A stretch of 64,000 nucleotides of DNA from Hyaloraphidium curvatum SAG 235-1 (GCA_025558095.1 JAIVFI010000030.1:1-64000), one strand, 5' to 3'. Numbered from the stretch's first letter, positions 7,645 through 62,798 are shown. Notes: generated by a model from the sequence alone, not told the origin. Program-made: numbers and translations.

Positions 7645-8252
7645 ATGGCGCGCATCTCCGCAACCATCCTGATCGCCCTCGCGGCCGTTGCCTGCCTCTT
7701 CGTCGGTGCGTCCGCCCTGTAAGTTGTCTTCGTGGGGCACCGCAACGCGGCAGGCCACTGAACGGAGCCCGCCCCCGCCCCAGGCCTGCCGACGAAGCCC
7801 GCGCCCTGAGCGTAAGGAGCTGCTCCGAGTGCCCCGAAGAGACACACTACTGGTGCGTTCCTCGTCCGCTTGCGGTCGCCATGGGCCCCTGCTGATCGAC
7901 CATCGCCCCGCCCCCGGCCAGCGAATACTCCGAAGCCGGCACAATTTGCCTCGCCTACGCCAACGCCCGCTCGCTCTACCGCCGCTACGCCCCGCAGTGC
8001 GGCGCCGTCGGCCAGGACTGCTGCCCCGGCTACTCGTGCACCGCCCCCGCCGTCTGCAAGTTCGGCCCGCCCACGGCCTGCGTCACCTGCGGGCTGCTGT
8101 ACAACCCGTGCTGCGGCGGGATGGGCGGCACCTGCACTGCCGGGGCGTGCGACAGCTTCGGGACCTGCGTGCCGTGCGGCGGGTCGGGGCAGCCGTGCTG
8201 CGCCGGGAACCAGTGCAACAGCGGGCCCTGCTTCACCAGCACCTGCTTGTGA
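7645..8252 (+). CDS. Small secreted cysteine-rich precursor (3 exons)
   Basis: Exons 7645-7718, 7784-7852, 7922-8252 give MARISATILIALAAVACLFVGASALPADEARALSVR-SCSECPEETHYCEYSEAGTICLAYANARSLYRR-YAPQCGAVGQDCC...CGLLYNPCC...CGGSGQPCC...STCL*. Canonical splice sites; not in ORF track. Confidence 0.85.
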
Positions 8253-8416
8253 GGAGGGCAGAAGGAAGGTTTCCAGGCAGCCAAGCATCGCTTCTATCAG
8301 TCTCGCCAAGTAGCCGCCGCAGTGTGGATCGTCGGAAGTATCGGATATCAAACAGGCGTCACGTTGCTTCGCACCCGCTGGCGGCCACCGTCCCGGCGAT
8401 CCAGCCGAGCCCACCA

Positions 8417-8660
8417 GTCCGTGGCGCGATGACGAGTTCGATCCCGCCGATGCCGGGTGCGACGTCCTGCGGCACAAGTCCCCGGGGCTTTCTACGCCGC
8501 ACCGCTTGACGACCCCGACTCCGGCCCGCTGGTCCGCAGGGAGGGGCCGCTGTTCCACGATGTCGTCCTCCGGCACGCTGTGCAGGAGCTGCGGTGTTAC
8601 CACATCAGCTCCTCGGACTTTGTCTATCGAGGAGGAGGTCGGGGGGTGGTTTTTTGAGGT
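8417..8660 (+). pseudogene. Degenerate copy of the last exon of the 4273-7106 gene
   Basis: Aligns by eye with about 6847-7088 (gacgagttcgat...tgcgacgtcct...ttctacgccgc...gaccccgact...gaggaggtcgggg) with indels that break the frame. Confidence 0.85.
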
Positions 8661-9001
8661 ACATCACGGCCCTGGGACCGCTGCAGCCGGAGCGCTGGGG
8701 CGCCCGCGAAGACGTTGTCGAGCGATTTCCGTGCCATTCCGGGGTGGACCATGCTTCTGATTCCGCGCGCCCATGTGACCATCCGTACGTGAGCGACGGA
8801 ACTACATTCGATACAAAACCCAACTCCCGCACCTCGGATGTCGCCTCGCGCCTCCGATCCCGCGTCCCGTCGCCGGTCGCCCCACGTGCGTGCGGCGCAC
8901 CCGCCCGAAGACCCTTGGGCCGCCCAAACGCGCCGCCAATCTCCGTTCAGCACCGCCCCAACCCGGCAACAGGGCCGCCCCGTGCGGTGCCGCGAGACAG
9001 A

Positions 9002-9256
9002 ATGGGCGCGGGAAAAGCGCTCGAAGACGGGTTCCCGCCGCCCCGCCCGCCGGACGAGCCGCACGCGGGGGAAGGGGAGGGCGGGGAGCGCGGGCGCCGC
9101 GCGGCCGACCGCGCTGTCTGGGCGTCGCTGCTGGGCGCCGGCGCCGCGCTGCTTATTTTCGCCGTCGTGCTGGCGGCGTTCGAGGCCGCGTTCCCGGATT
9201 CCGCGTCGGGCGCGGCGTGGGAGGACTGGGGAGGGCCGGCGGACGGGGCGGCATGA
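9002..9256 (+). CDS. Small single-TM protein (84 aa), hypothetical
   Basis: ATG 9002; hydrophobic VWASLLGAGAALLIFAVVLAAF; GC3-rich codons. Confidence 0.45.
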   Translation: MGAGKALEDGFPPPRPPDEPHAGEGEGGERGRRAADRAVWASLLGAGAALLIFAVVLAAFEAAFPDSASGAAWEDWGGPADGAA

Positions 9257-9972
9257 GGGCTCGGCGCCGCGCGGACGGGAACACCGGGACGGCCCGCCGG
9301 GCACGTGGGACCGATCGTGGGGATCGAATGCGCCGACTCGCGGCGGGATTGGGCACGAATGGGGGTTCGGCCGGAGGGGGGGCTTCCTTGCCGCAGCGGA
9401 TCGGCGACGGCGGTGGCCGGTGGTGGCGACACCCCTCGCTCCCTCTCCAGGGCACGCGAACTCGATCGGCGGATCGGAAACTTCCGTGCCGCACTGGAAT
9501 GCATGTTCCGCCGGCTGCGGGCCGGGATGCTCGGGATGCCGCTGGCGGCGCCGTGTTTGGCGCGGCGAGCCGGCCCGCAAGGACAGTGGCCCGCCCGCGG
9601 GATCGACCGGCGCCACTGCAGGGACTCACGGACGGCACGTATTCTTCAGATGGACCGGGAGAGAACGGTTGGCTCGGATTGGCGGTCGCGCTACCCTCGA
9701 TGTCCGCATCGCGAGCGAAGGAGCGAGGCGGAGCGGATTCGCCCCGGCAGACACAGACGTAGAGACATGTAGACCAGCTTAGAACGGACATCAATTCTGC
9801 ATCCGCCGGACGGCACCGTGCTTCTTCCACCTTCATCGCGGCGACCGATCAGCCGCTCCGGGGCACGTGCCCGACCGCTTCCCGCGTCCCGCATCCCGCA
9901 TCGTCACTCCCCTCCATCCCCCCCCTCTCCCCTCCCTCCCTGCCCCCATCTACCGTCCCCCCGCCGCCCCCG

Positions 9973-10161
9973 ATGCAGCGCTTCCGCCCCCTCCTCGACG
10001 GCAGCCCGCCGCCCTCCTTCGGCGGCGCCCTCCGCCTCCGCATCACGCTGCTGCTCTCCGCCGCCGCCCTCCTGGGCGTGGGCGTATGGCACGCCGTCGT
10101 GGGGCTGCTGGCGTCGCGGGAACAAGGGGGCTGGGCGGTGCGGGGCAACGCGAGCGGGTGA
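9973..10161 (+). CDS. Small single-TM protein (62 aa), hypothetical
   Basis: Follows a C-rich 5'UTR-like tract typical of genes here; TM segment ITLLLSAAALLGVGVWHAVVGLL. Confidence 0.4.
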   Translation: MQRFRPLLDGSPPPSFGGALRLRITLLLSAAALLGVGVWHAVVGLLASREQGGWAVRGNASG

Positions 10162-10333
10162 GGGGAGCGGACGAGGGGGGCCCGCAGCGCTCGGGGGCCC
10201 GACCCGGACGGACTGCCGCCTCGGGGACACCGGCCGTCTCGATTGCGGAGCCTCTAATCGGCCCGCGGGTATCCCACAACACGACGCAGATCGGTATCCC
10301 GGTATCCCCCCCCCCCCCCCCTTCCCGCGGCGC

Positions 10334-11845
10334 TCAGTGCCCCACCAACCCCCCCTCCGCCTCCCTCGCCCTCCCCGCGCCGTCCGGCGCCCCGACGGCG
10401 TACATCACGCACCCCCCCGCGACCACCGCGCAGCCGACCACCTTGGCCGCATCCAGGCACTGGCTCCCGTCGCGGGAGCAGAACCACGCGTGGCCGCCGA
10501 CGAGCACCACCGCCGCCGAGAGGCCGTTCAAAACGTTGGTGCTGACGGCGCCCATCGAGTGCAGGAGGGTGTAGTACGACAGGTTCAGGGAGAAGTGGAG
10601 GAGGGTGAGGAGGGCGTAGAGGGCGAGGATGAAGGGGACGGCGTGCGTGCCGCGCTCCCGGACGGGCCCGGCGACCAGGCCGTCCCACCGGGGGAGGGTG
10701 TAGAAAGAGATCCATGCAAAGAGGAGCAGGCAGCTGGTGGAACCGACCCAGGTGCAGACTTCCATCGGGGTCGGCGGCGGGGGGCCCGAGTGGGGCGGGA
10801 GGTCCTCGGGGGAGGCGTCGGCAAAGATTTTTTCGGTGAGGGCGGCGACGAAGGCGTCTGTCCGACACGGGGGAGGGACACGATCAGCGACGGCGGTGAC
10901 GGAATCCGCGCCGCACGACACCCACACGCCACGGTCCCGCCGAGGTTGAGCAGCACCCCCGCCCACTGGAACTCGCCGCTCTGCCACCCGCTCATGCCCA
11001 TCCCCACCGCGACCGCCAGCACGGCGGCCCACCTCCTCCGCCCGAGCATCCGCCGCCGGCCGAGCCACCCGCTCAGCACGGCCGTGAGGGGGACCACGGC
11101 GCCGTAGACGACCTGGTGCAGCCCCGCGCCGGCGACAAAGATGCCGACGGTGACGAGGGTGTTTGCCAGAATGTCGAGGAAGGAGAGGAGGAGAACCTGC
11201 GGGAGGAGGTGCGCGGGGGGGAAGAGGGTGCGGGCGGCGGCGGGGCCGTGGTACTTTGGGGAGGTCAGCTGGGCCTTGTCGGGGGACGGGTCGCGCGGCG
11301 GGGAGCGCGGGCGGTCCGGCGGGGCGTCGGAGAGGAGGGAGGAGAGGGCGGAGACGACGTAGGCGGCGTCGAGGGTCGCGGGGAGGAAGTAGGCGGCGAC
11401 CATGCCGAGGTACTGCGTGAGCACGACCAGCATCGACCACTCGTCTAAAGGGGGCCCGGAGGACCGTCAGCAAATTCCCGTATCAGCTGAAGGTAAGTTG
11501 GCACCGACCCGCGGAACCCGAGTAGTACAGCTCCTGCGACACCAGCGAGATGCCCGCGCCCGACAGCAGGAACATTGCCTGGTTTGCTGCGGCGACCCAC
11601 CACACCGGGTCGAGCAGCGCGGCGGCCACCGCCCCCGTGGGCGCGGACCGCGTCTCGGGCAGCGGGAGCAGCGGCGCCTCGGCCCGCGGCGGCGGCGACG
11701 GCGGCGGCGACGGCGGCGCCGTCAGTGGGTGCGCGGTGTTTGCCGGCTCGCCCGCGGGCGGAGGGGCCGCCGGCGCCCCGAAGGCGCCCGCAAAGAGGCG
11801 CGCGGCGGCCGCGGAGAGCAGCGCCGCGGGGCCCGGGTCCGCCAT
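10334..11845 (-). CDS. DMT-superfamily (SLC35-like) membrane transporter, 3 exons
   Basis: Three ORFs join through introns near 11510-11446 and 10927-10858. Multiple TMs; LDILANTLVTVGIFVAGAGLHQVVYG and MGAVSTNVLNGL motifs typical of SLC35/DMT. Confidence 0.8.
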
Positions 11846-12323
11846 GGCGCGCTCGTTGGGGTTGCCGGGGACGGTTGAGTTGATTGGTGTCACCAGCCCG
11901 GGTTGCCTTGGGGGGGCGGAGCGCGGACGGTGACTCGGACACACCGAAGATGGGACCTTGGAAAGGCCGACTGCGCTCGGAAATGGAAGTAAACACGGCA
12001 TGGTTAGCGCACATGCGCAATCGGGCCCGGGATTCGCCGCTGCCGGACTGCCACCGCCCGGCAATCGGTGTCACCGAGGGATGCCGGTTCCGGTCCCCAG
12101 CGCGTCAGCTGGGTCACGGGACGATCGAGCGAACGACTGGTGTGGCACGCGTGCCACGGGCGATAGGATTGGGTGGGATGGGGCATCGGAGTGCGCGGCC
12201 GATCGACGTGTATAGTGTCTTCTTATTTCGATCGACCGCCGAAGCTTCGAAGTTGCGCCGCCGACGTCGGTCCTCCAAAGAATCCCCGGCCGGGTCCCTG
12301 CAGGACAACTGCCGGCTTCCGCG

Positions 12324-13300
12324 ATGGAGGACGTGCGCCTTCCCGCTGTTGGGCCGCCCGCAGCGGCGGCTCCCTGTGCCGACGAGGCCGCGTTCTCTGC
12401 GCTGCCGCCGACCATCGCGTCGGACGCCGACCGCCAGTCGCGGCGCCGCATCCTGCGGCTGCTGGACACGACCGACTTGGGGTAGACCCGCGGCACTTCG
12501 CGGCCGCCGACCCGCGGTATCCGCGCGCCGCCCCGCTCCCGCTGCCCGCCGCCGGCGACCGCCCGCTTTTCGGGAGGGACGCCGCGCCGCTCTCGCGCGC
12601 GCAGGCGGCCGCCGTGTTCGCAAAGGGCGGTCTGCGCCCGCTGGCCGCCGTCGCCCGCGCCATGCTCGCGCTGGCGGCCGCCGAGGCGCGCGTCGGCACC
12701 GTGGCCGCCGGCTTCGCCCTCGCGCTGCTGTCGGCCGTCCCGCTGCTGGCCGCCGTCGGCCTCGCCCGCCCCCCCGGCGAGCCCGCGGGCCCCTTCGCCG
12801 CCGCTTGCGCTGGCATCCTGCTGTGCGCCGCCGTCACCTACGCGCCGTGGATCGCCGTGCACCACCGCGTGATCGCTGCGCCCGGCTTCCCGTCGCCCGC
12901 AGACCCTGACCTCGTCGATCACCCGTTGTCGACGTTGGCGTGGTACTGGGTGCGCACCGACAACGGGCACCCGGGGCCGGCGTCGTTCTTCGAGCACAGG
13001 CCTGACGCAGGCGACCTGGCCCCGCTCGAGCCGCTCTACGGCCGGGTCGGCGACAAGCAAGGGGATGCTGCAGACCTCGAATCCGGCCCATCGGGCGGCG
13101 GCGGTGCCGCTGCGGGCTTCCGGCGCTCTGCCTCGTGCCCCTGCCCGGACTGCATCGGATTCTTTTCCGCGGGCGGCCGGCCCATCATCTGGCGCATGCT
13201 GCTACAGCACTGCGTCCTCCTCCCCGGCATCCTGACCGCCGCCGTCGTCACCTCCTTCTGGAGCCTCGTGGGTCGGAAAAGGGCTGAGCGCGGGACAGCG
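12324..13300 (+). pseudogene. Broken or truncated member of the local multi-TM 'CPCxxC' family
   Basis: ATG 12324 stops at 12483-12485 while the coding signal continues in another frame (VDPRHF...). Two TMs, SCPCPDC, one more TM, then no C-terminal TMs. Confidence 0.5.
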
Positions 13301-13720
13301 ATATGTCGCGGGGAGGGTAGGGGGGTGTTTCGAAGGCGGCGGCCAGGAAACGAGAGCCGCTCCGTGCCGTCGAGGCACCGGACGGCGGGCCGTATTAACG
13401 CGAGCTCGGTCGACGCGTGGGGTGCAGAGCAATCGGGCTGTTTCCTCTGTTGCACCGGGTCCCTAGGTACATGTCGGGGTCTTCATTGAGAATGCTGCCG
13501 AGCATCACCAACCGCCCCCGTCCTCGAGCAAAACATGGCCTCCAGCACTTGGAAGCCGCTCGTCCGACGAGGAAAAGCACGGAACCGGGGATCAATGGGT
13601 GCTGCCTACAAGCGAGCGGGCTTCCGGGTCCCGCGCACATAGTTGGAAGGGCGCTCGGAGCAGGTGCGGGTTGCCAGCGGTACCGAGCGCCCCCGCAACA
13701 ACGGACCATCCGCGGCTACG

Positions 13721-14567
13721 TCACCCCTGCGGGCGATACGCCGACCTCGGTGGCTCCCCTAGCGGGGCTGTCTCCGGCGGCCGCTGTCCTCCCGGCGCGG
13801 GCTGCCCCGCCGTCGCGCCCGGGGGCAAGTTCTGCGCCGTCCCCGGCCGCCCCTGCGCCTGCAATCCATGCCCCGGCTGCCCGGTAGCGCCGTACGGACC
13901 GCCGGATGGGTACCACGGCGGCGGCGCCATGGCCCAGGGAGGCGGCAGCGTCGGCGGCGGCCTCGGGGGGCCTTGCCACAGGGGCGGTCCGGGCGGTTGG
14001 TAGCCCTGCGGGCCCCAGGGCGCCGGGCCGCGGGGCTGCTGGGCGGCGGGAGGTTGCTGGGCGGGCGGGTACCAGGGTTGCTGCTGCCAGGGCTGCTGCT
14101 GCGGGTGTGGCGGCGGCCAAGCGAGGTCCGGGAGGAAGGGGTACCGCGCCGGCGGCGGCGGGGCCTGCGGGGGCTGCCACGGGGGCCAGCCGGCGGGCCG
14201 ATCGTCCGGCGGGCCGAGGGAGGGCGGAATGGGCTGCTGCCGGGGCGGGCGGGCGGCGTGGGTGTTGGCCGTCGCCGCCTCCGTCCCCGGCGTCCCCGGT
14301 GCCGGGGCGGCCGCCGGCGCCTCGGGCTGCGGCACGCACGGTATGCCCAGCCGTTCGCAGCGCGTGCACATGTCGCCGCCGCGCTTCAGGTCACATTTCC
14401 GCTTGTTGGCTCTGCACTCAGTGCTGGGAACACGGGCGGTTATAGTCGCCCCGGGGAGGAGCAGGCAGTCCGCCTCACCACACGCGCCGGGGGAGCTGCC
14501 GCCTCCTCTGCGCCCTGGCTGGCCCGCCTCGTCCGCCGGCGCCCGGCCCGGCCTCCTCCGCCTCCAT
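13721..14567 (-). CDS. Zn(II)2Cys6 transcription factor with a Pro/Gln-rich tail
   Basis: Intron 14478-14424 reconstitutes CTECRANKRKCDLKRGGDMCTRCERLGIPC, followed by a P/Q/W-rich region. Confidence 0.85.
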
Positions 14568-15508
14568 TCGCGCCGCGACGCAACACCACCGCCGGCGGAT
14601 GTTAAAGACTGGGATGGGCTGGTGATCGGGAAACCTTAGAACCACTGGCCCCCGCCTCGCCGGCCAGGCCCCGGGATGGCATGCACGGGCGGATGTGCGA
14701 CGGACTTCGGGAATGTCGCCTGCGAGGTGCCGGTCCGGGATGGCAGCTTCCCTTCGCGCTGTCGCAACCGGGAGCCGGGGGCTCGGGACCCTGGCCCAGG
14801 CGCCACGGCTGCAGTCGCCAACGGCATCGGCCACCACCCGCGCGCCAACCCCGCATCTCCGAGCATCCACGCCGCCGACTCGCAGCGATGTAATCCCCAG
14901 GCACCTCCCGGGCCGGGCTTGACCGCTGCCGCGGGAGCCATTGCCTGGGGCGTCCCGTGCGCGGTCCCCGCAATCCTCCCTCCGTTCCGCCGCTCCCTGC
15001 CAAGGCTCCCCATCCCGTGCCCCGCTCCTGCGGACGGAGCCGGCCGCCTCGAGACGCTGAGGAGGTTCGTCTCCAGGCGGGGACGGGTCCGGAGCGCGGG
15101 GCGGAGGCGGTTCGGAGGCGGGCTCGCTGTTTCGCCGCCGACGCTCGGCCATTTTTTTCTTCGGCCCCCGAAGAGCCCGTGCGGGCGACGCGGAGCCCCC
15201 GTCCGCACCCGGAAGCGGCGGAATTGGCGACGCCTTGCCGCGATCTAGACGCGCCGCACGGCCCGGGTCCCGGGGGTGCGTGCGATCTCGGGCGGCGGGC
15301 GGGGATCCGGCACCGCCCCGACGGCTGCCGCGCGGGCTCGACGCCGGTCGTTCGGAAGCAGGGGACCGGAAATCCGGGCCGCGCAAGGGAATCGGACCCA
15401 TCTTATCATTCCGAACGCGCGGACCGCCGCTACACGGCCTAATCCAACTGCTTGCCTCCCGACGCCCGCCCCGTGCCCGAGCAACATCCGCCTCCCCCGA
15501 TGGTTCGA

Positions 15509-19661: not shown

Positions 19662-19962
19662 GGCGCGGTTCCGGGATTGCTTATGGCAGCGGGGAGTTCT
19701 TCGGGAAGGGGAGGCCGCCGGGTTGAGGCAGGCGGGGATCTCTGACTGGACTTTGGCGGGGAGGAGTCGGGCCGTTTACCGGAGGGACCAGGGCAAGCCG
19801 AACATGTATCTGATTATTGCTTCATTCGATTAGTATCGTCTTCAATGTTTCCGGGTCGCCGATCGAGGACTTGTCCGCGGATCGGCAAAGGGATGTTGCG
19901 CCAGGCGTCCTTTCCATAGGTGGTTTCCCGCCCGCCTGTGCGCCTCCAACACCAACCCCGCG

Positions 19963-23836: not shown

Positions 23837-24250
23837 ATTTGCCCTCGCATTGCCGACACATCTAACATGGCACGGCGCCCAGGGAACACGGCATCGTCGC
23901 ACGTCACTACATTCGGGTCCGCGACGGCCGACAATCGTGCACATGTCCTTCGGGGGATCGTCCAGGACAAGCTCATTTTCGCGATCCTGGCAACCCGTCA
24001 GGCAGAACAGCTCCTGGGTCGCGACCGGATGGCTGCGATGACGTCGCGGCCGCGCAGTTCGCCAGCGAGCCTTCGTTCTTGCGCGCAGAATTGCGCAGCC
24101 CCGGTGAACAGCAGGCGAGCCGCCGAGGTAGAGGACGCCCTCCTCGGTGGAGCTGAACGCGTCGAACGGTGTTGCCCAGTCCCTTGCCTCCCTTTGCTTG
24201 TTGACCCCGACGCGTGTCTCCCGCCCCGCTCTCGCAGCACTGCCTCGAAT

Positions 24251-25478
24251 ATGGCGCTGGCAAACAGCGTGAGGCCGACGGCGGACCTCACCCCGATCCC
24301 CGTCGCCGCATCGCGCACCGTCCACACGCACCTGATCCGCCCCGACGAATGCGACCACCGCTCCGTCGCCTTCGGCGGCACCATCCTCGCCTTCGTCGAC
24401 ATCATCGCGGGCGTCAGCGCGGCCAAGGTCGCCCGCGGCGCCGTGGTCACGCAGAGCCTGGACAGCGTGTCGTTCCTGGAGCCGGCTCGGCAGGGGGACA
24501 TGCTGATCGTCTCGGCGAGCGTGAACCGCTGCTGGAAGAGCTCGCTCGAGGCGGGGGTGAGGGTCGAGGCGGAGAACTGCGTGTCGGGGGCGCGGAGGTT
24601 CGTGTGCCAGGTGAGCTGCGCGACGGGTCGCACTTTGCCGCGTCCAATGACCTCGGCCCGTCCCCGTTCACGCTTCTCAACCCCCCATTCGACCCGTTCC
24701 AGGCCTACCTCACCTTCGTCGCCCTCGACCCCACCACCGGCAAATCCGTCTCCGTCCCCCCCGTCGTCCCCGAGACCGACGCCGAGAAGCAGCGGCACGC
24801 GCTCGCCGAAACCCGCCGCCAGGCCCGCACCGCCTCCCGCACCCCACCTCCCCCCACGGTACCCGGCGTCCCCCTCGCCCGCGCCGTCCCCCGCGCGGGC
24901 CCGCCCCGCGCCGGGCCCGACGGCAGCCTCGCGAGGCCCTCGGGCGATTCCTACGTCGAGAGCGTGCACAGCGTGTTCCCGCACATGGCCAACCACACGG
25001 GCAACACCTTCGGCGGCAGCATCATGCGGCTCATGGAGCAGGCCGCCGTGCTCTCGGGCTACCGGCACGCGCGCTCGCCGGTGGTCACCGCCTCCTTCGA
25101 CCGCATCGCGTTCATGGGCCCGTCCCGCACGGGGGACCTCCTGGTCGTGCGGAGCTGGGTGACCGCCGCGTGGGGAGCGAGCTGCGAGGTGTACGCGCAG
25201 GTGGCAGTGCAGAGCCCCAGGGAGAGGAGGGCGATCGTGGACGGGTACGTGACCATGGTCGCGCTGGATTCGTCGGGGAGCAGGGTGGGCGTGCCGGCGG
25301 CGGTGCCCGAGACGGAGGAGGAGAAGCAGAAGGCGTGGGTGATACCGGCGGCTGGGGGATCCGCGGTCGCGACTGACGAAATCCATGTCGGGACAGCGTC
25401 GGGGCCACGGATCGGCGCAAGGCCAGGCTGGAGCAGAAGAGGCTGCTCGAATCCAGACCCGAGACGCCCAAGCTGTGA
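24251..25478 (+). CDS. Double hot-dog acyl-CoA thioesterase
   Basis: Two hot-dog motifs (AFGGTILAFVD; NHTGNTFGGSIMRLME); introns near 24611-24703 and 25335-25397. Ends ...ETPKL*, a possible PTS1 variant. Confidence 0.88.
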
Positions 25479-42773: not shown

Positions 42774-44817
42774 ATGAGCGCCCCCAAACTCCTGCGTCGC
42801 AGCACCACAGCCTCCTCGTCGTGCTGCTCACCGCTCCCGCTGCAGGCGCATGAGCACGACCACGGTGCCGCTCACGGCGGACACGCGTCGGAGGAGGTCC
42901 TGGACGGCCCGCCGGACGCCATCCCGGAGGGCACCGTCCGCGTTTTTGTTGCGAAGAAGATCGTCACCGTCGCGCCCGGGCCCGGGGTCGCCGAGGCGGT
43001 GGCGGTCGGCTCGAACGGGCGGATCCTGGCGGTCGGGTCGCGCGAGGACGTGCTGGCGTTCGCCGAGGCCAAAGCCGCCAAGGGAGCCGTGGAGGTGGAC
43101 GAGACGTTCAAGGACAAGGTGCTGCTGCCGGGATTCGTCGAGGGTGGGTCCCCCGGCGGAGCCGTCGTCAACCGATGGGCACTCACTGGTTCTCTCCCGC
43201 TCCCACCCTCCTTCTCCTCCAACATTTAGCCCACGGGCATTGCAACGAGGCCATCAACGCTACCCTCGTCAACGTCGGCTACTTCCCATCCCCCAAGGTC
43301 AACGGCGACATGTCCGAGCCCGTCAAGAGCTACGACGACATGGTCCGCGTTCTGCGGGCCGAGGACGCGGCGATGAAGGCCCGCGGGGCACCCGACGACG
43401 AGGTCATGATCGCCGTCAACTTCGACCCGATCTACTTTGTCGGGCAGCTGCGGCTCTCGAAGGAGCACCTTGACCGCGTGTCGACGACGAGGCCGATCGC
43501 CGTCCGCCACGCGTCGGGGCACGTGCTCACCGCCAACTCGCTCCTGCTCAAGCTGTCCGGGATCACCCGCGACAGCGACACCGAGGGCATCGACAAGCTC
43601 CCCGACGGCGAGCCCTCGGGGGAGCTACAGGAGGGCGCCCAACTGCTGGTCAAGGTCGCCATCACCAAGGTGCTCCAGCTGAGCGTCGGCACCGCCGCGC
43701 TGGAGAACCAGGCCCGCCTTGCGCGCAACGCCGGCGTGACCACGACGACGGAGCTGGGTGGCCTGCTCCTTTTTAAGCCCGAGATGGCCAAAGCGTGGGC
43801 CGAGACCGCCGCCAAGCCGGCGTTTCCGGCGCGGTTCGCCGTGTACAACATTGCGTTCTTCCCCGGGCTCGGGGACGGCGCGCCGGACTACGCGGGCAAG
43901 GCCGAGACCCTCAAAGGGCTGCAGGCCCTTTGCCACGACAAGCTCCGGATGCCGGGCGCCAAGCTCCTCATTGACGGCTCGATCCAGGGGTTCACCGCCG
44001 TGCTGCGGCCGCCGGGGTACTTCAAGCCGCCGTCGGGGGATCCGGATCACCAGGGGATCAGCAACTACGAGTCCCTCGAAGACTTTGTCGCGGCGCTGGA
44101 GCCCTTCCACGAAGCCGGTTTCAACGTGCACGTGCACTGCAACGGGGACGGCGCGGTGGACGTGCTCCTGGATGCCGTGGAGATCGTCAACACCAAACAT
44201 CCGCGGAGCGACCACCGGCACGTGTGCACCCACAGCCAGGTATCCAACGGCCACCGCACGACGCGTTCCTCCCCTCTCTGACCCCGCCTCCCTCTACTTT
44301 CCAGCTCACGCGGCAGGACCAGTACCTCCGCATGGCCTCGCTCGGCGTCTCGGCCAACATCTTCGCCAACCACATCTACTACTGGGGCGACCAGCACCGC
44401 GACATCACCGTCGGCCCCGAGCGCGCCGCGCGCATGAACGCCTGCCGCACCGCCCTCGCCAGCGGCGTGCGGTGTCCCAGCATCCACTCCGACTCGGGCG
44501 TCACGCCCATCGGCCACCTGCACACGATGTGGTGCGCGGTGAACCGCCTCACGGCGTCGGGCGAGGTGCTCGGGGAGGGCGAGCGGATCACAGCCGAGGA
44601 GGCGCTGAGGATGGCGACGGTCAACGCGGCGTGGCAATTGAAGATGGACAGGGACGTGGGCAGCATCGAGTGCGGGAAGATGGGGGACTTTGCGGTCTTG
44701 GAGGAGTCGCCGCTGGACGTGGACCCGGCCAAAATCAAGGACATCAAGGTCTGGGGGACGGTGGTGGGCGGGCTGAAGCACCCGTCGTCGCTGACGCTGC
44801 GGGCCGGGACGATCTGA
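42774..44817 (+). CDS. Amidohydrolase family 3 (YtcJ/NfdA-like)
   Basis: AVAV..GRILAVG, LLPGFVE|AHGH, HASGH...NS, KLLIDGSIQG, HCNGD, HSDS, GSIECGKMGDFAVL; at least two introns. Confidence 0.92.
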
Positions 44818-54086: not shown

Positions 54087-55406
54087 TCATCTTCGATCAA
54101 CGGCCTCTGCCCGCCCGCCAATCATCTCCACTTCCGCCTCCCCATCCAAGTCCCCCAGCGGCTCGTCCAAAACCCCCTCCTGCACCCCTTCCCCGCCCCC
54201 GTCCTCCTTGGGCGCCTCCCCGCACCCCTCCCAATCCACCGTCCACCTCGCCGCGATCCCCATCTCGGCCTTCCACCCCTCCCCCGTCCTCAGGCAGTCG
54301 TTGAGCCCCGCGTGCTCGCACCCCTTCGATCCCGAATAGACGCAGTCCGAGCGCGCGCGGAGCAAGGGGGCCGAGTACAGCGCGGCCCCGCCGAACGCGC
54401 CCCGCACGGGTACGAACGGTTCCTTCCCCTCGCCGTCCCCCTGCTCCTTCACATTCTTCATCCCCTCGGGCCCGACATACTCGCAATACCACCCCCCTTT
54501 CTTCGCCCCCGCGCAGCTGCGGTGGTCCAGCGCTCCCCCGGGAAACGCGCCCCCGCCGTCGAGCGCGAACCGGTCGCAGTAGTATCCTTGCGCCCCCTCC
54601 GCGTGCGGCGCGGCGGGGACGGATGCGACGGTGCCGTTGGGGAGAGAACGGGGGAGGTACCACCCACAGATGCCGTTGGGGAAGAGGGCGGACCAGCCCT
54701 TGCCCCCGAAGGGCGGCCGGAGGTGCGAGGTGGAGGGGTCGAGGCGGTCGTACCGCCGCTCCGCGGCCAGGAGGTTGGTCCACACACCCTCCCATCCCTC
54801 CACGCCCCGCTGCCGCTCCACGCGCCACGGCACGCACATGTCCGTGTCCACCGGGAACAGGTAGTCGACGTTCGAGTACCAGGAGTGGGTCCGCAGCGCG
54901 TGGAGGTACCCGTCCCGCGCGCGGGCGAGCGTGCGGAGGTCCTTCTTCCCGCCCGGGTGGCGGAACGCGACGGCGCGGGCAGAGAGGATCTTCGGGTGTC
55001 GCGAGGGGCGGAGCGGCGGGGCCGGCGGGGCCGGCGGGTACGGAGGCGTCCAGTCTTTATGGTCGTCCTCGGATTCCAGGAACGGCACGCCGCGTTCGTC
55101 CGCCCAGGCGCGCAGCGCGCGGCCGCCGTCCCGCGAGCCGTTCTCGACGAGGAGGACGTGCAGCGCGCCAACCATCGACGCGAGGCGCTCCAAATTTGCG
55201 AGGAGGAAGGGGAGCTCGTGCGCCGCGGAGCGGGCGATGGTGGCGGCGAGGAGGACGAGGTCCGACGGGCAGCGCGCGCGGGACGCGTTGGAGGCTGTCC
55301 GTGGCGCGGGCTCCGGCTCGTCATCGAGGGCGGCCGGCGGCGACCGGAGCAGGAAAAACGACGAAATGAGCAGGACGAGCAGAACGAGTAGGTTCGGATG
55401 GGGCAT
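54087..55406 (-). CDS. CAP59/CMT1-like (GT69) mannosyltransferase-family glycosyltransferase
   Basis: N-terminal TM; VENGSRD, LARARDGYL, VDTD (DxD), DRFAL, VRGAFGGAALY, CEH; intronless. Confidence 0.8.
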   Translation of the reverse strand: MPHPNLLVLLVLLISSFFLLRSPPAALDDEPEPAPRTASNASRARCPSDLVLLAATIARSAAHELPFLLANLERLASMVGALHVLLVENGSRDGGRALRAWADERGVPFLESEDDHKDWTPPYPPAPPAPPLRPSRHPKILSARAVAFRHPGGKKDLRTLARARDGYLHALRTHSWYSNVDYLFPVDTDMCVPWRVERQRGVEGWEGVWTNLLAAERRYDRLDPSTSHLRPPFGGKGWSALFPNGICGWYLPRSLPNGTVASVPAAPHAEGAQGYYCDRFALDGGGAFPGGALDHRSCAGAKKGGWYCEYVGPEGMKNVKEQGDGEGKEPFVPVRGAFGGAALYSAPLLRARSDCVYSGSKGCEHAGLNDCLRTGEGWKAEMGIAARWTVDWEGCGEAPKEDGGGEGVQEGVLDEPLGDLDGEAEVEMIGGRAEAVDRR

Positions 55407-55824
55407 TCGAGGCCATGGGCGACACCGTTGACGGCTCTGACGGATCCGTCGATCCCCCTCCCTCGATCTCCGAGCAATTCAAGAAACCAACGACGTGAGC
55501 CACGAAATGCACAGATATACATGTGATCTATCGAGTTCGGCCTACTGGAAGTGTGGATGCTCGCGATTCGGACAGGAATCGTCCCGACCGTCCGCCGCGC
55601 CCATTCGCCGCCTGGAAGCCAACTGAGCCTGATCCGCCAATGCATGACACCGCGGAGGACACGGAAGAGCCTCTCACCAGTAAATTGCGCCCGTCTTTGC
55701 CAGTTTCGGTCGCTTGCCTCCGTTTGGGGGCCTACCAACGGTCACATGACGTGGCCCATGCAGGGCATCTGGTTCCGCACGGCCGGCGGTCCCTTATCTG
55801 ACGGCGTCATCCCGGCCCACCGGA

Positions 55825-57366
55825 ATGGCGCTCGTGTGCAGCTGCGCGACGACGCAGCTCGTGCTCCGCGGCACGGGCTCGCTGTCGCTGGTCGGCGGGG
55901 CCGGGCGGCCGCCTGGGGAGCGCGCCGCGGAGATGCCGGTGGCGACAACCGCGCCCGCGGGAGTCCAGGGTCCCGGACGCCCCGGGTTGCCCGGAGAACT
56001 CGTATCGCGCATTTTGAGCAAAGTGGACCCGCTGGACTCGGCGACGCTGGCGGCCGCCGCGGCGGTGTGCCGCGCGTGGCGGCCGTGGGCGACCGAGCGG
56101 CTGTACGCGTACTGCCGGCCGCCGCTCTCAAAGCTCGACTCGCTGGCCGCATTCTGGGAATCTCAGTACCCTTCGGGCGACGACGCGCCCTCGGCCAGCC
56201 TGCTGCTCGACGCCCCGCGGCTGCAGCACGCCGTGCGACTGGACGGGCTGTTCCCGCTGCCCCCCGCGCCCTCGTCGCTTCCCGACCACCCGCTGAAAAC
56301 CCTCGACCTCTCGCTGCTCTCGCACGCTTCGGCAGCCGCCTTGCACCGCTTGGCCCTGCACTCCCCGCCGGCCTCGGCCCTGGTCACCGCGAAAGACTAC
56401 CGCCACATGGCCGGCGGCTCCCTGGCCGCCCTGCTCACCCGCTCGCCGCGTCTGCTCCGCCTCGTCCTACCGGAAAGCTACGGCGAGGACCGCCTCTCCA
56501 TCGACGACTTTTTCCTCTCCCTGCTCCCCACCACCGTCCCCCTCCTCGCCCATCTGGCCGTGTACGACAACGGCCACGTGACGGACCGCGGCCTCCCGCC
56601 CTTCTCGCAGCTCCCCCTGCGCTCGCTCCACCTCGCAGTCGTGCCGTGGCGCGTGATTCTCGCAAAATTGCTGTCGCACCTGCCGCCCACCCTGGAATCG
56701 CTGGGCATGGGCAAGCTCAAGGCGCGCGACGCGGACCAGCTCGTCTGGTTCCTCCGCGACCACCCTTCCATGAACGAACTGGACCTCCCCCACGCCGAGC
56801 CCGGGTTCTTCGCGGGCGGCACCGTCGCCCGCCTCCTCGACGCCGCCCCGGCGCTGGAGAGGCTGGGGATCGAGGTCGAGCCCGGGCAGACCATCCCGCC
56901 CCCGCCGCCTGCGGAACCGGAACCACAACCTGCGGAAGGCGAGCAGCCCGATGCCGATCCCGGCGGCGCCGAACAGCTGCAGCCGCCCCCCGTCGCCGCA
57001 CCGGCGCCGCAGGAGCCGGAACCGCACTACCTCTCGGGCCTGCTGTCCCCTCCCCCGTCCTTGACCCACCTCCGCGTGGCGGGGCACGCGCTGCCTCCCG
57101 ATCTGCTCCCCCGCGTGCTGCCGCAGCTCGTCGCGCTGGACGCCAGGGGGTGCGGGGCGGAGGTGGCCGCGGCGTTCGCGGCGGGGGCAAGGTACCCGAA
57201 GCTGAGGATGGTGGACGTGCGAGGATGCGAGGGCGTGGAGAGGGAGGTGGTGGTGGCCGCGTGCCCGGCGCTGGAGAGGGTGTTCGTTGGGGAGATCAGG
57301 CAGGGGGACGGGCTGCGGGAGTGGGGCGCTTTCGGGAGCGAGGGGGGGAGGTGGAACCTCTCTTGA
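55825..57366 (+). CDS. F-box / RNI-like leucine-rich-repeat protein
   Basis: LPGELVSRIL...AVCRAW F-box followed by LxxLxL repeats. Start may be the ATG at 55932. Confidence 0.8.
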   Translation: MALVCSCATTQLVLRGTGSLSLVGGAGRPPGERAAEMPVATTAPAGVQGPGRPGLPGELVSRILSKVDPLDSATLAAAAAVCRAWRPWATERLYAYCRPPLSKLDSLAAFWESQYPSGDDAPSASLLLDAPRLQHAVRLDGLFPLPPAPSSLPDHPLKTLDLSLLSHASAAALHRLALHSPPASALVTAKDYRHMAGGSLAALLTRSPRLLRLVLPESYGEDRLSIDDFFLSLLPTTVPLLAHLAVYDNGHVTDRGLPPFSQLPLRSLHLAVVPWRVILAKLLSHLPPTLESLGMGKLKARDADQLVWFLRDHPSMNELDLPHAEPGFFAGGTVARLLDAAPALERLGIEVEPGQTIPPPPPAEPEPQPAEGEQPDADPGGAEQLQPPPVAAPAPQEPEPHYLSGLLSPPPSLTHLRVAGHALPPDLLPRVLPQLVALDARGCGAEVAAAFAAGARYPKLRMVDVRGCEGVEREVVVAACPALERVFVGEIRQGDGLREWGAFGSEGGRWNLS

Positions 57367-58060
57367 TCGGATCCTCGGGGAGGCGGATGGGGACGGTGCC
57401 GATGGGAACGGGAAGGAAGGGAACAGTGTCTTGCCGGATGGGAAGGGCGCTTGCTAGATGTACAGGTAGACGGCGGCGAAGAAAGGCCGATAGACAGATG
57501 CAGTAGTGGAACCTATGGGTTGGGAACGACCCGCTCTCCATCTTCTTCCTAACTGGAGCAAGAGCAGCCGTGCCCCGTTGTCCTTGCGACTCGTGGCGCG
57601 TGCTCTCCAGTTTTCTTCGCGTGCGGACGTCGGCAGTCGGCATGCACCTGCTTCGATTGCTTCGAGTATCGAGTATCAGCCTCACCAGCCCACCTCTACT
57701 TCGACCCACGTCTCCACGTCTCGCTACCGGATACCTGTTCACCGACCGGGCCGCCCGCTTTCGTCGACCAATCTTCTGCTTACGGGGCAGGCAGTGTTGG
57801 CTGCCACCGCAACGCACGGCGCACCCGCAGCGAGGAAACCGGCACTGCGCGCGGGTTCTTTCATTGCCTCGCTCCGCGCTCGAAGGAGCAGCACCCGCGG
57901 TGCCGTCCGCACCGTGCGGCGCTTAGACGGAGAGTGAAGCCCTCGGGCGCTCCCACATCGGGCCGGGTGGTGCCGCATCCCGGCGGGCGCGAGGTCCACC
58001 GCGCCCTCGCTTCGTTGTCGGTCTTTTCGCGGCCCCCCTCGACTGCGCCGCACAGCCAGG

Positions 58061-60498
58061 ATGCCTCCGCGACGACTTCGCTTACAGCCGCGACGAATGA
58101 CGCGCGTCTGCGCTGTCGGGATCGTCGCCGCGTTGATCGCCACGCGCGCGGTTCCGATCTGGGGCGCGACCATCGTCGACGGCTTCATCCCCGGCTCGGG
58201 CTGCAGGGTCAACGCCACCGCGCCGCAGCTCTGTGCGTCGACGCCCGGCCCCCACCCGCTCCTCACTGATCATGTCCCCCCTTTCCCTCTCCTGCCGAGC
58301 AGTCCAGGCGAACCTGCCGACCACCTGCCAGGGCAACGTCGCCTGCATTCCCAGTAACGCCACAGTCAACTACGACGTGACCCAGACCTGCAACGCCAAC
58401 GCCCCCCCGTCCTTCACCCTCCAGGGCTCGGTCGGTTTCCGCGCCCCATTTCCGCGCCCGGCACACTCTGACGCCCCCCTCCCCCTCCCATCCGCAGGGA
58501 GACTACTTTGTCGTCACCCAGTGGTCCGGCGCCACCTGCACCGGCACCTACCTCACCGCCGCCGCCGTGATCGCCAACCAGTGCGTGCCCCTCGGCTTCA
58601 TCGGGATCCCCGCCTTCGGCCGCCCTGCCTGCGCCCCTGGCGCCGCTTCGGGCACCATGGCCTTCTTCGGTAACGACGCCTGCACCGTGGGTTTGGCCTC
58701 GTGGCCCAGCGCCCGCCCTCCCATGACGCGTTTGTCCTGCCGCCCCAGATCCCCTTCACTGGCCTCGGCACCTTCAGCGTCACCGCCGGCAACTGCGGCA
58801 CCCTCTCGCTCGGCCCCTCCACCTGTAAGTCCCCCACTTCCCCGCCCTTTACCCCGCGCTGACAACTTCCCACCCACAGTCGCCCTGACCGCCAAGTGCG
58901 CCTCGATCGTCAATGGCTCCCCGGTCATTCCTTTTGCTGCTATTGCGGCGGTTACAACTACGACAACAACCACGACAACGCAAACGTTCACCACCGCGAC
59001 ACCAACAGAGGCGACACCGGTTCCTCCAACGCCAGCATCCTCATCTCCACCTGTTGGGGCGATCGTCGGTGGCGTGATCGGAGGAATCGCGGCGGTCGCG
59101 GCCATCGCCGGGCTGTTGTTCTGGCTGCGGCGAAGAGGTAGGCCTGCGGAAAGTGTTCCTGCGGATCCAGCAGAGAAGCAGCAGCCTAGAGGCTCGCCGA
59201 ACCTGGAAACCGCTGCGACAGCTCAGCACTACAAGGGAGCGGGCCCACCACCAGCGCCAAATGGCTTCGTTGCTTCTGCTCCAGTTCCCGCAACCATTGC
59301 CGTTGACAGTGTCCCGCGAGTGGTGGCTTCAGCTCCCGAACCTAGCAAAACCGCACTCCTCGTGGACCTCGCCTTGGTGCCAAACAATGACGCGGAACAA
59401 GCTTTGCCCGTGCAGCACGCTGCGGCCGTTGCTCTTGCTTCTCCTCCGTTGGGTATAGGGGGTGGAGCTGAGGACACGGGATCGACCTTCGCCGCGGCCT
59501 CACTTGCCTCCGGTGCTCCCCTTCCCCCCGGCGGCGGAACCCCGATCGCCCCCCTCCCTGTCCCGCAGCCGAGCTCCAAGCTCCTTGTTTCGGCTACGGA
59601 CATCGTCATCGACAGCTCGCAAAAGCTGGGAGAGGGCAGCTTTGGGGTTGTCTATGTCGGCACTCTGCGCGGGACTAGAGTCGCAGTCAAGACTCTGAAA
59701 GGAGACCTCGACGAGCACACTCTGAAGGCTTTTGCGAAGGAGGTGACCAACTGGGAGGGCCTCGTCCAGCGTAACGGTGAGCGGCTCGCCAACGGCTCGG
59801 AGTCTGTGGAGGTGCTGATCTCCACGCTTTTACGCAGTCCTCCCGCTGATGGCCTACTGCCCTTCTCCCCCGATGATGGTCACCGACCTCGTCCGCGACG
59901 GCAACCTCCGCAAGTACCTGTCGGCCCGCGGCTGGCCCCTAGACCTCGGCCTGCGCTTCCTCGAAGACGTCGCCAACGGCATGGTCTACCTGCACGGCCT
60001 CGGCATCCTGCACGGCGACATCAAGTCCCTCAACGTGCTCATTGACGGCAGCAAAGCCATGATCACCGACTTTGGCCTCTCGCGGGTGCGCCAGGAGGTC
60101 GGCAAGTCGACCGCCGCGGGTACCGTCGGCGGCGGGCTCTCTGGCACGCCGGGGTTCCTGGCGCCGGAGCTGGTGGACGGCGCGGCGCTGCAGAAGCCGG
60201 CGGACGTGTACGCGTTCGCGATGCTGTGCTACGAGGTCGTGAGCAAGGGCAAGTACCCGCTCGAGGAGCTGCTGAACCCGGCATTGGTGGGTGCGAGCGC
60301 CGCCATCGCGAGCTTCGCTGACAATCACCTCCCACCCAGGTCCTGTACAACGTCGCCGTCAAGGGCGTCCGCCCGGAGCGGCCCGAGGGGGTCCCGGACG
60401 CGGTGTGGAGCCTGATGGAGCGGTGCTGGGACCAGGACCCGAAGAAGAGGCCGACGTTCGTGCAGGTGGCCAAGGAGCTGGACGAAATCGTCAGATAG
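58061..60498 (+). CDS. Single-pass receptor-like TKL kinase, copy R (7 exons)
   Basis: Introns 58233-58302, 58431-58497, 58687-58748, 58825-58879, 59777-59837 and 60287-60339 give an open signal-ectodomain-stalk-TM-kinase frame ending LDEIVR*. Confidence 0.92.
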
Positions 60499-60654
60499 GC
60501 CCTACGGTAGATGTCCCCACTACTTTTGCAATTCAATCGTGTTTGCAGATCTGGCGGCGCTGTGATTCGAGGAGCGGGCTGGCCACGGCGCGACTTCCTC
60601 TCCCCCGCGAATCTCCCGCAGATTGTCTCCCGAGCAGACAGCCTCCCAACGACG

Positions 60655-62191
60655 ATGGCCGCCTCGGGCGCCGACGACGTTATCCTTCAGAAGGACGCGG
60701 ACTTCCTGCCCGAAGAGTGGCTGGCCCTATTCCCCGCCCCGTCTCCCCCGGTCCCGACGTTCGGCGACGAGGAGCAGGGCGCGAACCCCGAGGACGCCGC
60801 CCGCGCAGCTGACCCTCTGACGGCGGACGGAATATTGCGCGACCTGGGCGGCGCGGCAAAGGTGGCGGCGTGGCCCGTCCTGCGCGTCCACGCGGCGCTG
60901 CCGGGCTGGTTCACGGCACTCGCGATTTCCCCTTCCAGTGCCGCCACCATCGCCCTCCTCGGGCTCACCGTGCCCTTGGCAGGGGACATGTTTACCGCCA
61001 AGGACGTGGCGCTCGGAATTGCGGGGACGACGCTGTTTCTCACAGGGCTCTCTGTCAGTTACGGCCTCGTCAGCCCGTTCCTCGGCGCCAACATTTTTCG
61101 GAACGGCTTGGTGGAGTTCTCGCACGTGGCAGCTCTTTGCCGATGGCTGCGGCTCGTTGGCCGAGGGAAAACGCCTCAGGGCGTCGAGGCCGCCTCCTCG
61201 CCCCTCGTGCGCCACGTCCCCGGCGACCTCTCTTGCCCGTGTACGTCGTGCTGCAGTTGGGTCGAAAGCACATCTGGAATCCTCGACTTCCTCGATCTTT
61301 TCGGCAACGTTTCCCTTGGTTGGATGGTCTTGTTCTTTTTCGCCTACACACCGGTTGTAACCTTCGGTGCGGCCCTGTGGTCGACTTGGTACGGCGCTCT
61401 CCTTGGGGCCATATGGGCATCCATGTTTCCGGCTTACATCTTCACTGCGTTGTCACGCCTCCTGGGGAACGACAATATGGCTCACACGGCCCTCCAACGG
61501 CGGCTGCACTGCCGAGCTGTCGATATGGCCATGGCTGACCTCCTGAGCCGGTTTCGCAGCGCCGCTGCTGCCGGCGATGCGCCTCCCCGCGCGGATTCGT
61601 GGCTCTACGTCAGGCTGCACTATCGCTTCGCGGCGCTCTGCCGGTTCAGACGCCAGCAGGACGGGATCGTGATCTCGCGGCTGTACGGGCTCGCTCTCGT
61701 GCCGGGTGCGGTCCTGCTTACCGCGCTGTATGCGGTGAGTGTCGCAGCGTCACGGTGCCGCCGGACACGCAACCTGACGGCTCCCCGGGCACCTTCCGCA
61801 GGCCGTCGGCCGCTGTATCTCCGCCTGGCAGCTTGCCGTGTTCGCCCACGCCGCGGTGTACTTTACCGTCAACGCCGTCAACCTCGCCTCCCGCAACTCG
61901 CTCATCGACGCCGTCGCGGCCGTCTACCGCGACGCGCAGAGGGAGCTCCGTGCGCTCGCGCTCCGCACCGGGCCGGGACCCCTTGCGGACGAGATCGCGC
62001 TCCACGACCGCGCGATAGCGTCGTTTCAGGACGTCGCCAGGTACAGGGCGAAGCTGTTCGGGTTCGTGGTGTCGTTCGGGACGGTGAGGACGATGCTGGT
62101 GACGGGGCTGACGGTCGCCGTCGCGCTGTGGAGCGTGCTGCGGGCTTTCGGGGTGACGGCGACCCTTGAGAGCTTCTGTCCCGTATCATAG
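60655..62191 (+). CDS. Seven-TM membrane protein, gustatory-receptor-like (7TMIC-like), copy C
   Basis: Intron 61735-61801; HVPGDLSCPCTSCC loop; C-terminal RAKLFGFVVSFGTVRTMLVTGLTVAVALWSVL. Confidence 0.75.
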
Positions 62192-62404
62192 AGGCCAGCG
62201 GATGCAGGAAGATCGGTTACTCCCGGAAGTGCTCGGGTTCCGAAGGTGGCGACGTCGTTCCAGTTGTGGCGGCCAAGGAAGTAAGGAACTGGATGGGCTC
62301 ATGGGATATTTGGACTAGAAAGCTGGAGTATCTAGTAATTTCCAGGCTTTCTTCCGCCTCTTCCCACTTCTCTCGAAATCGCCGCTGGGCGGCCTCGGCA
62401 CCGC

Positions 62405-62798
62405 TCAACTGTCCTCCGCGCACAGGCCCGAGACGCAGACGTCCGAGCCGCAGCAGTCCCCATCCCGGCTGCAGCCCTCGCCCGTGTCGGCACATGCCGG
62501 GGCGTACCGCTTGTACAGCGCCCGCCGGTCCCTTGCGGGCGCGACGCAGGCAACCATGCCCGCGGGGGCGCCGGGGTGCGCGTACTCGCAGAACTGGTGG
62601 GCGGCGCAATCAGCGCACGAACGGCGGAAGACGGCCGCGGTGGTGGATGGGGGACTGCGCGGAACAGGGGAGTCGTGAGCATCGGGCGGCGAAGGGAAGT
62701 CGGCGAACCCACGCCGCGGCGGCCGAGGCGACTGAGGCAACGATTAGGAGGGCGACGATTAGGAGGGCGACGATTTTGACGGCGGTCGTGAACTTCAT
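62405..62798 (-). CDS. Secreted precursor ending in an inhibitor-cystine-knot-like peptide (2 exons)
   Basis: Intron 62712-62655 gives signal-APPSTTAAVFRR-SCADCAAHQFCEY...CVAPARDRRALYKR-YAPACADTGEGCSRDGDCCGSDVCVSGLCAEDS*. Confidence 0.88.
62740..62775. repeat. 15-bp tandem repeat within the signal peptide (IVALL x2)
   Basis: cgattaggagggcga occurs twice, followed by cgatt. Confidence 0.85.

Follow-up and report, generated by a model that had tools for sequence, protein, structure and literature searches.

A folded four-cysteine module and a dibasic junction as a candidate shared pro-domain in a large family of predicted secreted proteins of Hyaloraphidium curvatum

The first 64,000 nucleotides of contig C30 of Hyaloraphidium curvatum SAG 235-1 (GCA_025558095.1, JAIVFI010000030.1:1-64000; 68% G+C; hereafter the window) carry two genes, gene 1 (7645-8252, + strand) and gene 2 (62405-62798, - strand), both of them members of a hitherto undescribed family with 150 genes or more. 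Each of them encodes a signal peptide, a cysteine-containing module, a basic junction of the form L-Y-R/K-R-Y and a C-terminal tail (Table 1). The positions of the two genes, their common motif, the phase-2 intron that follows the signal peptide, and the presence of a triple repeat in one tail versus a single unit in the other had been proposed in a preliminary description, and all were confirmed by our reading of the DNA. When the window was scanned with a profile of the module (see below), matches were found in genes 1 and 2 only.

Once spliced, gene 2 encodes exactly the annotated protein P0015 (111 residues). Its second exon (62654-62405) reads ..VFRRSCADC..FCEY..PGAPAG.VACV..ALYKRYAPAC and continues into one C-C-CC-C-C unit, i.e. 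six cysteines in the order of knottins, with short loops. In Pfam, this payload matched Toxin_23 at 18.5 bits, under the cut-off, and Dickkopf_N (PF04706) at 20-22 bits, versus a gathering cut-off of 25, so that Dickkopf_N was rejected as an identity. The DNA encoding the signal peptide harbors a perfect 15-nucleotide tandem duplication (62740-62785, - strand; two copies plus the diverged start of a third one), which appears as IVALL-IVALL in the hydrophobic core.

In gene 1, exon 2 encodes ..ALSVRSCSECPEETHY and terminates with TG, while exon 3 (7922-8252) supplies C-EY..C..SLYRRYAPQC, three six-cysteine repeats and the stop codon. The second intron, which the preliminary description did not mention, generates the CEY motif across the splice. 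The repeats are spaced as C-x6-CC-x4/6-C-x4/5-C-x4-7-C, a cysteine order that differs from C-C-CC-C-C, and neither KR nor RR occurs between them. This payload matched no Pfam family, and both tails remained under the cut-offs of the knottin families Toxin_12, Toxin_23 and Conotoxin. The top Foldseek rows for the gene 1 tail were all knottin or double-knot toxins (TM by target 0.6-0.7 over about 30 residues, E >1), and VIA-align returned a best Z of 2.3; we use "knottin-like" for this tail as a description, with no family membership implied. A word search with exon 3 did not find gene 1 in the public protein collection. The gene seems to have been missed by the deposited annotation, despite canonical splice sites at the positions conserved in the family.

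Table 1. Features of the two family members, with coordinates counted from the first nucleotide of the window.
Feature	Coordinates	Strand	Basis
Gene 1 exon 1, signal peptide, 24 codons plus 2 bases	7645..7718	+	ATG, hydrophobic core, ASA-type end; GTAAGT donor at 7719
Gene 1 intron 1, 65 nt, phase 2, at the signal peptide/module boundary	7719..7783	+	GTAAGT..CAG
Gene 1 exon 2, linker and first half of module, ..VRSCSECPEETHY plus TG of Cys3	7784..7852	+	profile positions 5-16 matched
Gene 1 intron 2, 69 nt, phase 2, within the Cys3 codon of the module	7853..7921	+	GTGCGT..CAG
Gene 1 second half of module, C-EYSEAGTICLAYANARSLYRR, up to the dibasic site	7922..7985	+	divergent subtype without PGAPxG loop
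Gene 1 junction L-Y-R-R/Y, predicted kexin cut between 7985 and 7986	7974..7988	+	motif; SLYRRY pLDDT <50; column conservation
Gene 1 payload, three tandem 6-Cys units (~7998-8081, 8088-8168, 8175-8246)	7986..8249	+	sequence reading
Gene 1 stop codon	8250-8252	+	sequence reading
Gene 2 exon 1, signal peptide, residues 1-29 of annotated P0015	62713..62798	-	sequence reading
Gene 2 intron, 58 nt, phase 2, at the signal peptide/module boundary	62655..62712	-	GTGGGT..CAG; splice gives P0015
Gene 2 module, VFRRSCADC..FCEY..PGAPAG.VACV..ALYKRY, no Cys3 intron	62504..62632	-	76.8 bits to family profile; core pLDDT >90
Gene 2 junction L-Y-K-R/Y, predicted cut between 62507 and 62506	62504..62518	-	linker plus junction pLDDT 53-59
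Gene 2 payload, one 33-residue C-x6-C-x5-CC-x4-C-x4-C unit, knottin-type spacing	62408..62506	-	sequence reading
Gene 2 stop codon	62405-62407	-	sequence reading

Aligned directly, the last exons of the two genes share a match of 27.7 bits (E 4e-6 in this single comparison) centred on RSLYRRYAPxC, which on the genome-wide scale has an E of only 0.16. We regard this modest similarity as real, because it is validated by the family profile, with its about 160 genomic places. The genome from which the window originates (31.9 Mb, 55 contigs) yielded 139 places with the gene 2 exon as the query, and at least 160 (150 of the 264 candidates were scored) with a 48-position module profile built from 15 intron-less modules. 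The scores reached 94 bits, and about 150 matches had E <1e-4. About 20 of the profile matches are full-length and some 130 begin at position 17, the glutamate right after the third cysteine, which points to an intron inside the third cysteine codon, as in gene 1. About 75 family members were read as DNA. The preliminary description had proposed a constant carrier and junction with swappable C-termini, and had suggested searching for paralogues; with 150 or more places and no fewer than 26 tail classes, this proposal holds. Gene 1, the exons of which served as separate queries, scores 13.5 and 10.9 bits (its two exons) against the profile, as a divergent member. Its subtype, which lacks the P-G-A-P-x-G loop, is common to the loci L032-L039, the tails of which comprise 1 to 5 such six-cysteine units. 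We assign gene 1 to the family because these intermediates, together with the same intron positions, connect it to the other members.

It is worth mentioning that the surroundings of gene 2 (L001, C30:60908-64153) are 100% identical over 3,246 bp to L002 (C48:16457-19702), and that C47 (L019) is 99.96% identical to part of C17 (L020). The small contigs C48 and C47 look like assembly duplicates or haplotigs, which slightly inflate the family counts.

Across 74 aligned modules, three of the four cysteines are present in every sequence and the third one in 73. The first cysteine is preceded by F (69/74), R (66/74) and S (58/74), the third is followed by a glutamate in 72 modules, and P-G-A-P-x-G-x-V-A-C-V is strongly conserved. 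The resulting consensus, x-F-x-R-S-C-x-x-C ... F-C-E-F/Y ... P-G-A-P-x-G-x-V-A-C-V, covers about 35 residues and is acidic (mean module charge -4.1). It is separated by a spacer of roughly 6 to 17 residues from the junction, where the columns comprise L in 72, Y in 67, R/K in 73, R in 69 and Y in 72 of the 74 modules (65-73/74 for L-Y-R/K-R). No residue is in the majority in the column after the junction tyrosine, and conservation thus ends one residue past the dibasic pair. At the other end, the signal-peptide columns show no consensus among the family proteins; hydrophobic N-termini with Ala-x-Ala-type ends were recognized by eye in both genes and in the listed family proteins. In 89 database proteins retrieved with the profile, the module lies at about residues 26-140, straight after the signal peptide. 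In the models of P0041, P0055, P0034 and P0089, the module occurs hundreds of residues further in, behind a VIT-family, a thioredoxin or another unrelated N-terminal part; these models look like neighbouring genes wrongly merged, rather than true fusions.

The exon structure is conserved as well. When 35 annotated proteins were mapped back to the DNA, a phase-2 intron between the signal peptide and the module was found in 27 of them, mostly 14-16 codons before the first cysteine, and an intron inside the third cysteine codon in 25 (phase 2 in 23), leaving a small middle exon flanked by two phase-2 introns. These shared phases and positions indicate a common origin of the family members.

An AlphaFold model of gene 2, built with a 74-sequence alignment, assigns block means of 90-94 on the predicted local distance difference test (pLDDT) to residues 8-40 of the mature protein, which are predicted to form three short strands with a turn at C-x-x-C. 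The values decrease to 53-59 in the spacer plus LYKRY and are 62-66 in the tail. In the last exon of gene 1, SLYRRY is the only stretch with a pLDDT below 50, the three repeats being at about 80. Hence, the module core is confidently modelled as a small folded beta domain, and LYRRY lies in a linker predicted to be floppy. The model of the module retrieved nothing below E 7 from the PDB with Foldseek, and with VIA-align the best of 48,161 chains reached Z 2.5, the weak neighbours (Z 2.0-2.5) being beta-defensin-like mini-proteins. In the ESM Atlas, the shape search stayed at TM <0.45 and the feature search returned no usable match.

The tails are as diverse as the module is constant. Their lengths range from 30 to more than 500 residues in the family, and 84 of them fell into 26 BLAST clusters (17 singletons), with clusters of up to 486 residues. 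The biggest cluster, which single linkage brings to 29 members, is built around some 19 PAN/apple-like domains with 8-10 cysteines in about 85 residues, and also chains in some EGF- and Stig1-like tails. Further classes consist of a 12-cysteine domain of about 125 residues (12 members), a 6-cysteine domain (7) and a cysteine-free beta-rich domain (6). Pfam recognized EGF, Stig1, NHL, PAN and ALK_LTK_GRD in some tails. As judged from these sequences, a constant module is joined to mutually unrelated tail domains, only some of which are small cysteine-rich payloads. A profile of the PAN-like tail matched 61 genomic places, 42 of which adjoin a module; the other 19, several of them in long open frames, do not, indicating that tail domains also occur cassette-free (the list of modules being a lower bound). 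The number of cysteines is even in 70 of the 84 tails and zero in 5, which argues that the four module cysteines pair among themselves. The cysteine-free beta-rich tails (L006/L007 at C14:155-157 kb, L046 and L062) are internally repeated, each repeat with an L-x-R-R (QLARR, ALRRR, LLRR), which could be an extra dibasic processing site, or merely part of the fold.

Searching 1.84 billion representative proteins with the profile gave 89 matches at E 0.001, 67 of them at 1e-10. The origin was checked for 60 of the 89 (30 by name, the rest by matching them to the DNA of the H. curvatum genome), and 59 come from H. curvatum. These 59 (NCBI KAI90..., locus tag DFJ74DRAFT) are called "hypothetical protein", or are merged models named after a neighbour gene. 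The only other origin is metagenomic: P0087, 39% identical to its best H. curvatum match, is encoded on a 954-bp ENA metagenome scaffold of lake type (ERZ28614139, MUNK22-1 scaffold_242474; L084) with a G+C content visibly lower than that of the window. Its DNA comprises a signal-peptide exon, a phase-2 intron, VLFRRSCSDC..LF, an intron within the cysteine codon (TG|T) and E.EYPGTPQGSVACV..LYRRY, and its tail belongs to one of the H. curvatum tail classes. Since this relative has both introns, the family and its exon structure are older than the H. curvatum strain. The family is lineage-specific. In keeping with the earlier remark that no described fungal family with this module was known, Pfam gave no match on the module in any of the 89 proteins, a PDB sequence search with the module profile had a best E of 0.76, the fold searches were as reported above, and our literature search found no paper on the module family. 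Opy2 (PF09463) was considered and rejected as an identity (16.6 versus 22.1 bits, and only on read-through of gene 1 exon 2), and a degenerate DNA pattern for EF.YPG.P.G.VAC had one chance bacterial match only in JGI contigs.

The family is concentrated near contig ends. For the 98 matches that fall on contigs of known length, the share located within 25 kb of a contig end is 27% (7% expected), rising to 58% within 100 kb (27% expected) and 94% within 200 kb (54% expected), an enrichment with a Kolmogorov-Smirnov p of about 1e-13. Gene 1 itself is 7.6 kb from the start of C30, where no telomere repeat is visible. From these distances, the family may be subtelomeric. Between its two family members, the window holds ordinary fungal genes that nothing links to the module family, including those encoding a Zn2Cys6 transcription factor, a 4HBT thioesterase, an amidohydrolase and an F-box protein (1814-3706, 23867-25162, 43175-44281 and 55825-57366, all on the + strand).

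We propose that the module is a shared pro-domain, which is cut off by a kexin-type enzyme and plays a common role in biogenesis, a proposal to which we give a probability of roughly 0.55. Cleavage is suggested by the combination of the L-x-R/K-R motif, the low-confidence linker, the end of conservation just after the motif and the occurrence of kexin genes. The Kex2 protease prefers an aliphatic residue at P4, Lys or Arg at P2 and Arg at P1 (PMC8528282), and the junction, with L, K/R and R at these three positions, fits this preference. Three H. curvatum loci encode a Peptidase_S8 (subtilase) domain together with a proprotein-convertase P-domain: L040 (C21:105266-108526), L041 (C33:284659-287937) and L042 (C17:594945-598112). 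Several weaker P-domain matches also exist in the genome. In the proposed sequence of events, the signal peptide would be removed and the disulfides formed in the endoplasmic reticulum, then a kexin-type convertase of the late secretory pathway would cleave after Arg-Arg or Lys-Arg, thereby freeing a tail with an N-terminal tyrosine. The job of the module would be a biogenesis step shared by all cargoes, such as folding help, sorting or latency. In this scheme, secretion, disulfides, cleavage and the purpose of the module are inferred.

Several points weigh against this proposal. The tyrosines at P3 and P1' are more than 90% conserved, which Kex2 specificity does not explain, and this pair may point to another recognition partner or to a structural function. 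The known fungal pro-domains removed by Kex2 have been described as devoid of secondary structure and mutually unrelated (PMC8528282), whereas the H. curvatum module is confidently predicted to be a disulfide fold, not a floppy pro-region. In a few members the site reads LYER, LYRQ, LYRS or LFGR instead, and these are expected to be poor kexin substrates. Furthermore, the predicted secretion is based on signal peptides judged by eye. Two related ideas were rejected: a charge-masking role as in defensin propieces is excluded, the module and the tails being both acidic, and the upstream F-R-R is not a second universal cleavage site, being dibasic in only 37 of the 74 modules and lying inside the first modelled strand.

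Instead of being discarded, the module might remain attached to the tail and work as an N-terminal domain, for instance one that anchors the protein to the wall or surface, mediates binding or pairing, or offers a handle to a receptor, LYRRY then being part of a hinge or a regulated site. The compact and confidently modelled fold, with its four invariant cysteines and invariant E, P, G, A and V, exceeds what a cleavage tag needs; the tyrosines at P3 and P1' are kept beyond the requirement of kexins; many tails are extracellular domains of the adhesion type (PAN, EGF, NHL); and the enrichment near contig ends resembles that of the surface-protein families of other fungi. We nevertheless find retention rather doubtful, because a strict L-x-R/K-R, placed in a low-confidence linker of variable length at the point where conservation ends, has the look of a processing site, and kexins of the secretory route would be expected to cleave a site so exposed. 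The converse idea, that the module is itself the product, i.e. an acidic four-cysteine peptide of about 40 residues and defensin size (a signal, a metal binder or an antimicrobial) released from a polyprotein with the tail as a second product, appears unlikely. A dibasic R/K-R just ahead of the first cysteine in 37 of 74 members would permit two flanking sites, but the other half have A-R, V-R or E-R at this position, which moreover lies inside the first strand of the confident fold and is probably structural. Similarly, the best fold neighbours are beta-defensin-like mini-proteins (Z 2.0-2.5), but these matches are non-significant and the mean charge of -4.1 is atypical of most antimicrobial peptides. 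Pro-domains can act as independent bioactive molecules (PMC8528282), but more than 150 genes for one type of peptide would be unusual.

The location near contig ends, together with an intron situated 2-6 codons past the junction in a few members, raises the question of a system generating variation, as for Pneumocystis MSG or toxins, in which the constant 5' cassette and junction would operate as a DNA recombination element shuffling subtelomeric tails, or the tails would be hypervariable under diversifying selection. We consider such a system quite improbable: each gene has its own cassette, rather than there being one expression site; the tails are unrelated domains, and the recent paralogues L006/L007 have near-identical tails; a module tree (47 columns) has no supported branch, so that it is unable to count tail swaps; and the window end has no visible telomere repeat. 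At the DNA level, the junction codons vary synonymously, near background (in 63 copies, Leu is CTG in 29 and CTC in 27, and Arg is CGC in 41, AGG in 14 and CGG in 6), which shows that the constraint is on the protein, not on the DNA, and led us to reject a CRJE-like DNA element at the junction. Finally, a chance pattern of cysteines, or an already described family, is a hardly credible explanation of the shared motif. The E of 0.16 for the direct match between genes 1 and 2 and the sub-threshold Pfam matches to Dickkopf_N and Opy2 might be invoked in its favour, but they are confronted with profile matches of up to 94 bits (about 150 at E <1e-4), conserved intron positions, 89 proteins without a Pfam match to the module, no PDB sequence below E 0.76, and named matches that are all "hypothetical protein".

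Coming back to the shared pro-domain, the data suggest that a large share of the H. curvatum secretome uses a single processing or sorting tag. More tentatively, it is possible that over 1% of the genes of this early-diverging, apparently free-living fungus have products that use one dedicated secretion tag (the folded four-cysteine domain plus L-Y-R-R/Y) that a lineage-specific partner would recognize, such as one of the three kexin-type convertases or a sorting receptor, as a fungal counterpart of the PEXEL/RXLR-type tags that is not tied to parasitism. Should the module indeed act as a shared pro-domain or sorting tag, one sequence would mark about 150 secreted proteins in the little-studied Monoblepharidomycetes, and for annotation purposes the family proteins would be findable, and their mature N-termini predictable, from sequence alone. 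It would also provide a natural case of one pro-domain on many unrelated folds, which bears on how pro-domains help in folding and sorting, and possibly a portable secretion and processing tag. To our knowledge H. curvatum is not a pathogen, and large families of secreted proteins that have a modular N-terminal tag and cluster near contig ends would thus not be limited to pathogens.

Parasites use export tags such as Plasmodium PEXEL, oomycete RXLR and Crinkler LFLAK; apart from the ubiquitin-like header of the Crinklers, these tags consist of short linear motifs, and they are cut by aspartic proteases. Similarly to the present family, they are found in hundreds of secreted genes, with the tag after the signal peptide, diverse C-termini and a protease cut during export, and the genes are often subtelomeric with an intron after the signal-peptide exon. 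The H. curvatum tag differs in being a predicted disulfide mini-domain plus a dibasic site, and no homology was detected. In the precursors of conotoxins and spider toxins, conservation is highest in the signal peptide, and the mature peptides, although homologous, are hypervariable. These precursors resemble our family by a conserved N-terminal part, a basic cleavage site, small disulfide-rich peptides and tandem "double-knot" forms like the gene 1 repeats, whereas the H. curvatum signal peptides differ from each other and the tails are unrelated (26 clusters), many of them being large or cysteine-free. The analogy with animal-toxin precursors drawn in the preliminary description is therefore valid for the constant N-terminal module and for some small cysteine-rich payloads, and fails for the unconserved signal peptides, the unrelated tail domains and the module, which is predicted to be folded rather than floppy.

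Among fungal systems, the effectors with a Kex2-processed pro-domain (K2PP; SnTox3, ToxA, SIX1/4/6; PMC8528282) likewise have a signal peptide, a pro-region ending with KR, RR or LxxR and an often cysteine-rich mature protein, with processing by a Golgi kexin expected, and their KR/RR/LxxR site in the first half of the protein is also present in our family. Their pro-domains, which come from plant pathogens, are recognized by disorder and have no common sequence, whereas H. curvatum reuses one homologous module, predicted to be folded and with four cysteines, on more than 150 genes with at least 26 tail types. The H. curvatum module also departs from the disorder of these pro-regions, its core being modelled as three strands with a pLDDT above 90 and only the linker being low. 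In addition, a single Kex2 has been reported for most fungi (PMC8528282), in contrast to the three kexin-type genes of H. curvatum. The Kex2-processed repeat proteins (KEPs; Ustilago Rep1, yeast alpha-factor precursor; PMC8528282) are also secreted precursors with dibasic sites, but they consist of short repeats each bounded by KR, whereas H. curvatum has one conserved junction, and the gene 1 repeats have no dibasic sites between them. The Pneumocystis MSG system (UCS leader plus CRJE junction; PMC2743713, PMC10622565) joins a constant N-terminal part to variable genes near chromosome ends, with a kexin site at the junction, which is reminiscent of the dibasic junction and contig-end enrichment of H. 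curvatum (contig ends not being equated with chromosome ends). Pneumocystis has a single expression site with one leader, and its 24-bp junction element is conserved at the nucleotide level, whereas H. curvatum has about 160 separate cassettes, synonymously variable junction codons and tails of unrelated folds. Kex2-type pro-protein processing is well known as such; what distinguishes H. curvatum is that one homologous module, predicted to be folded, is reused across unrelated cargoes.

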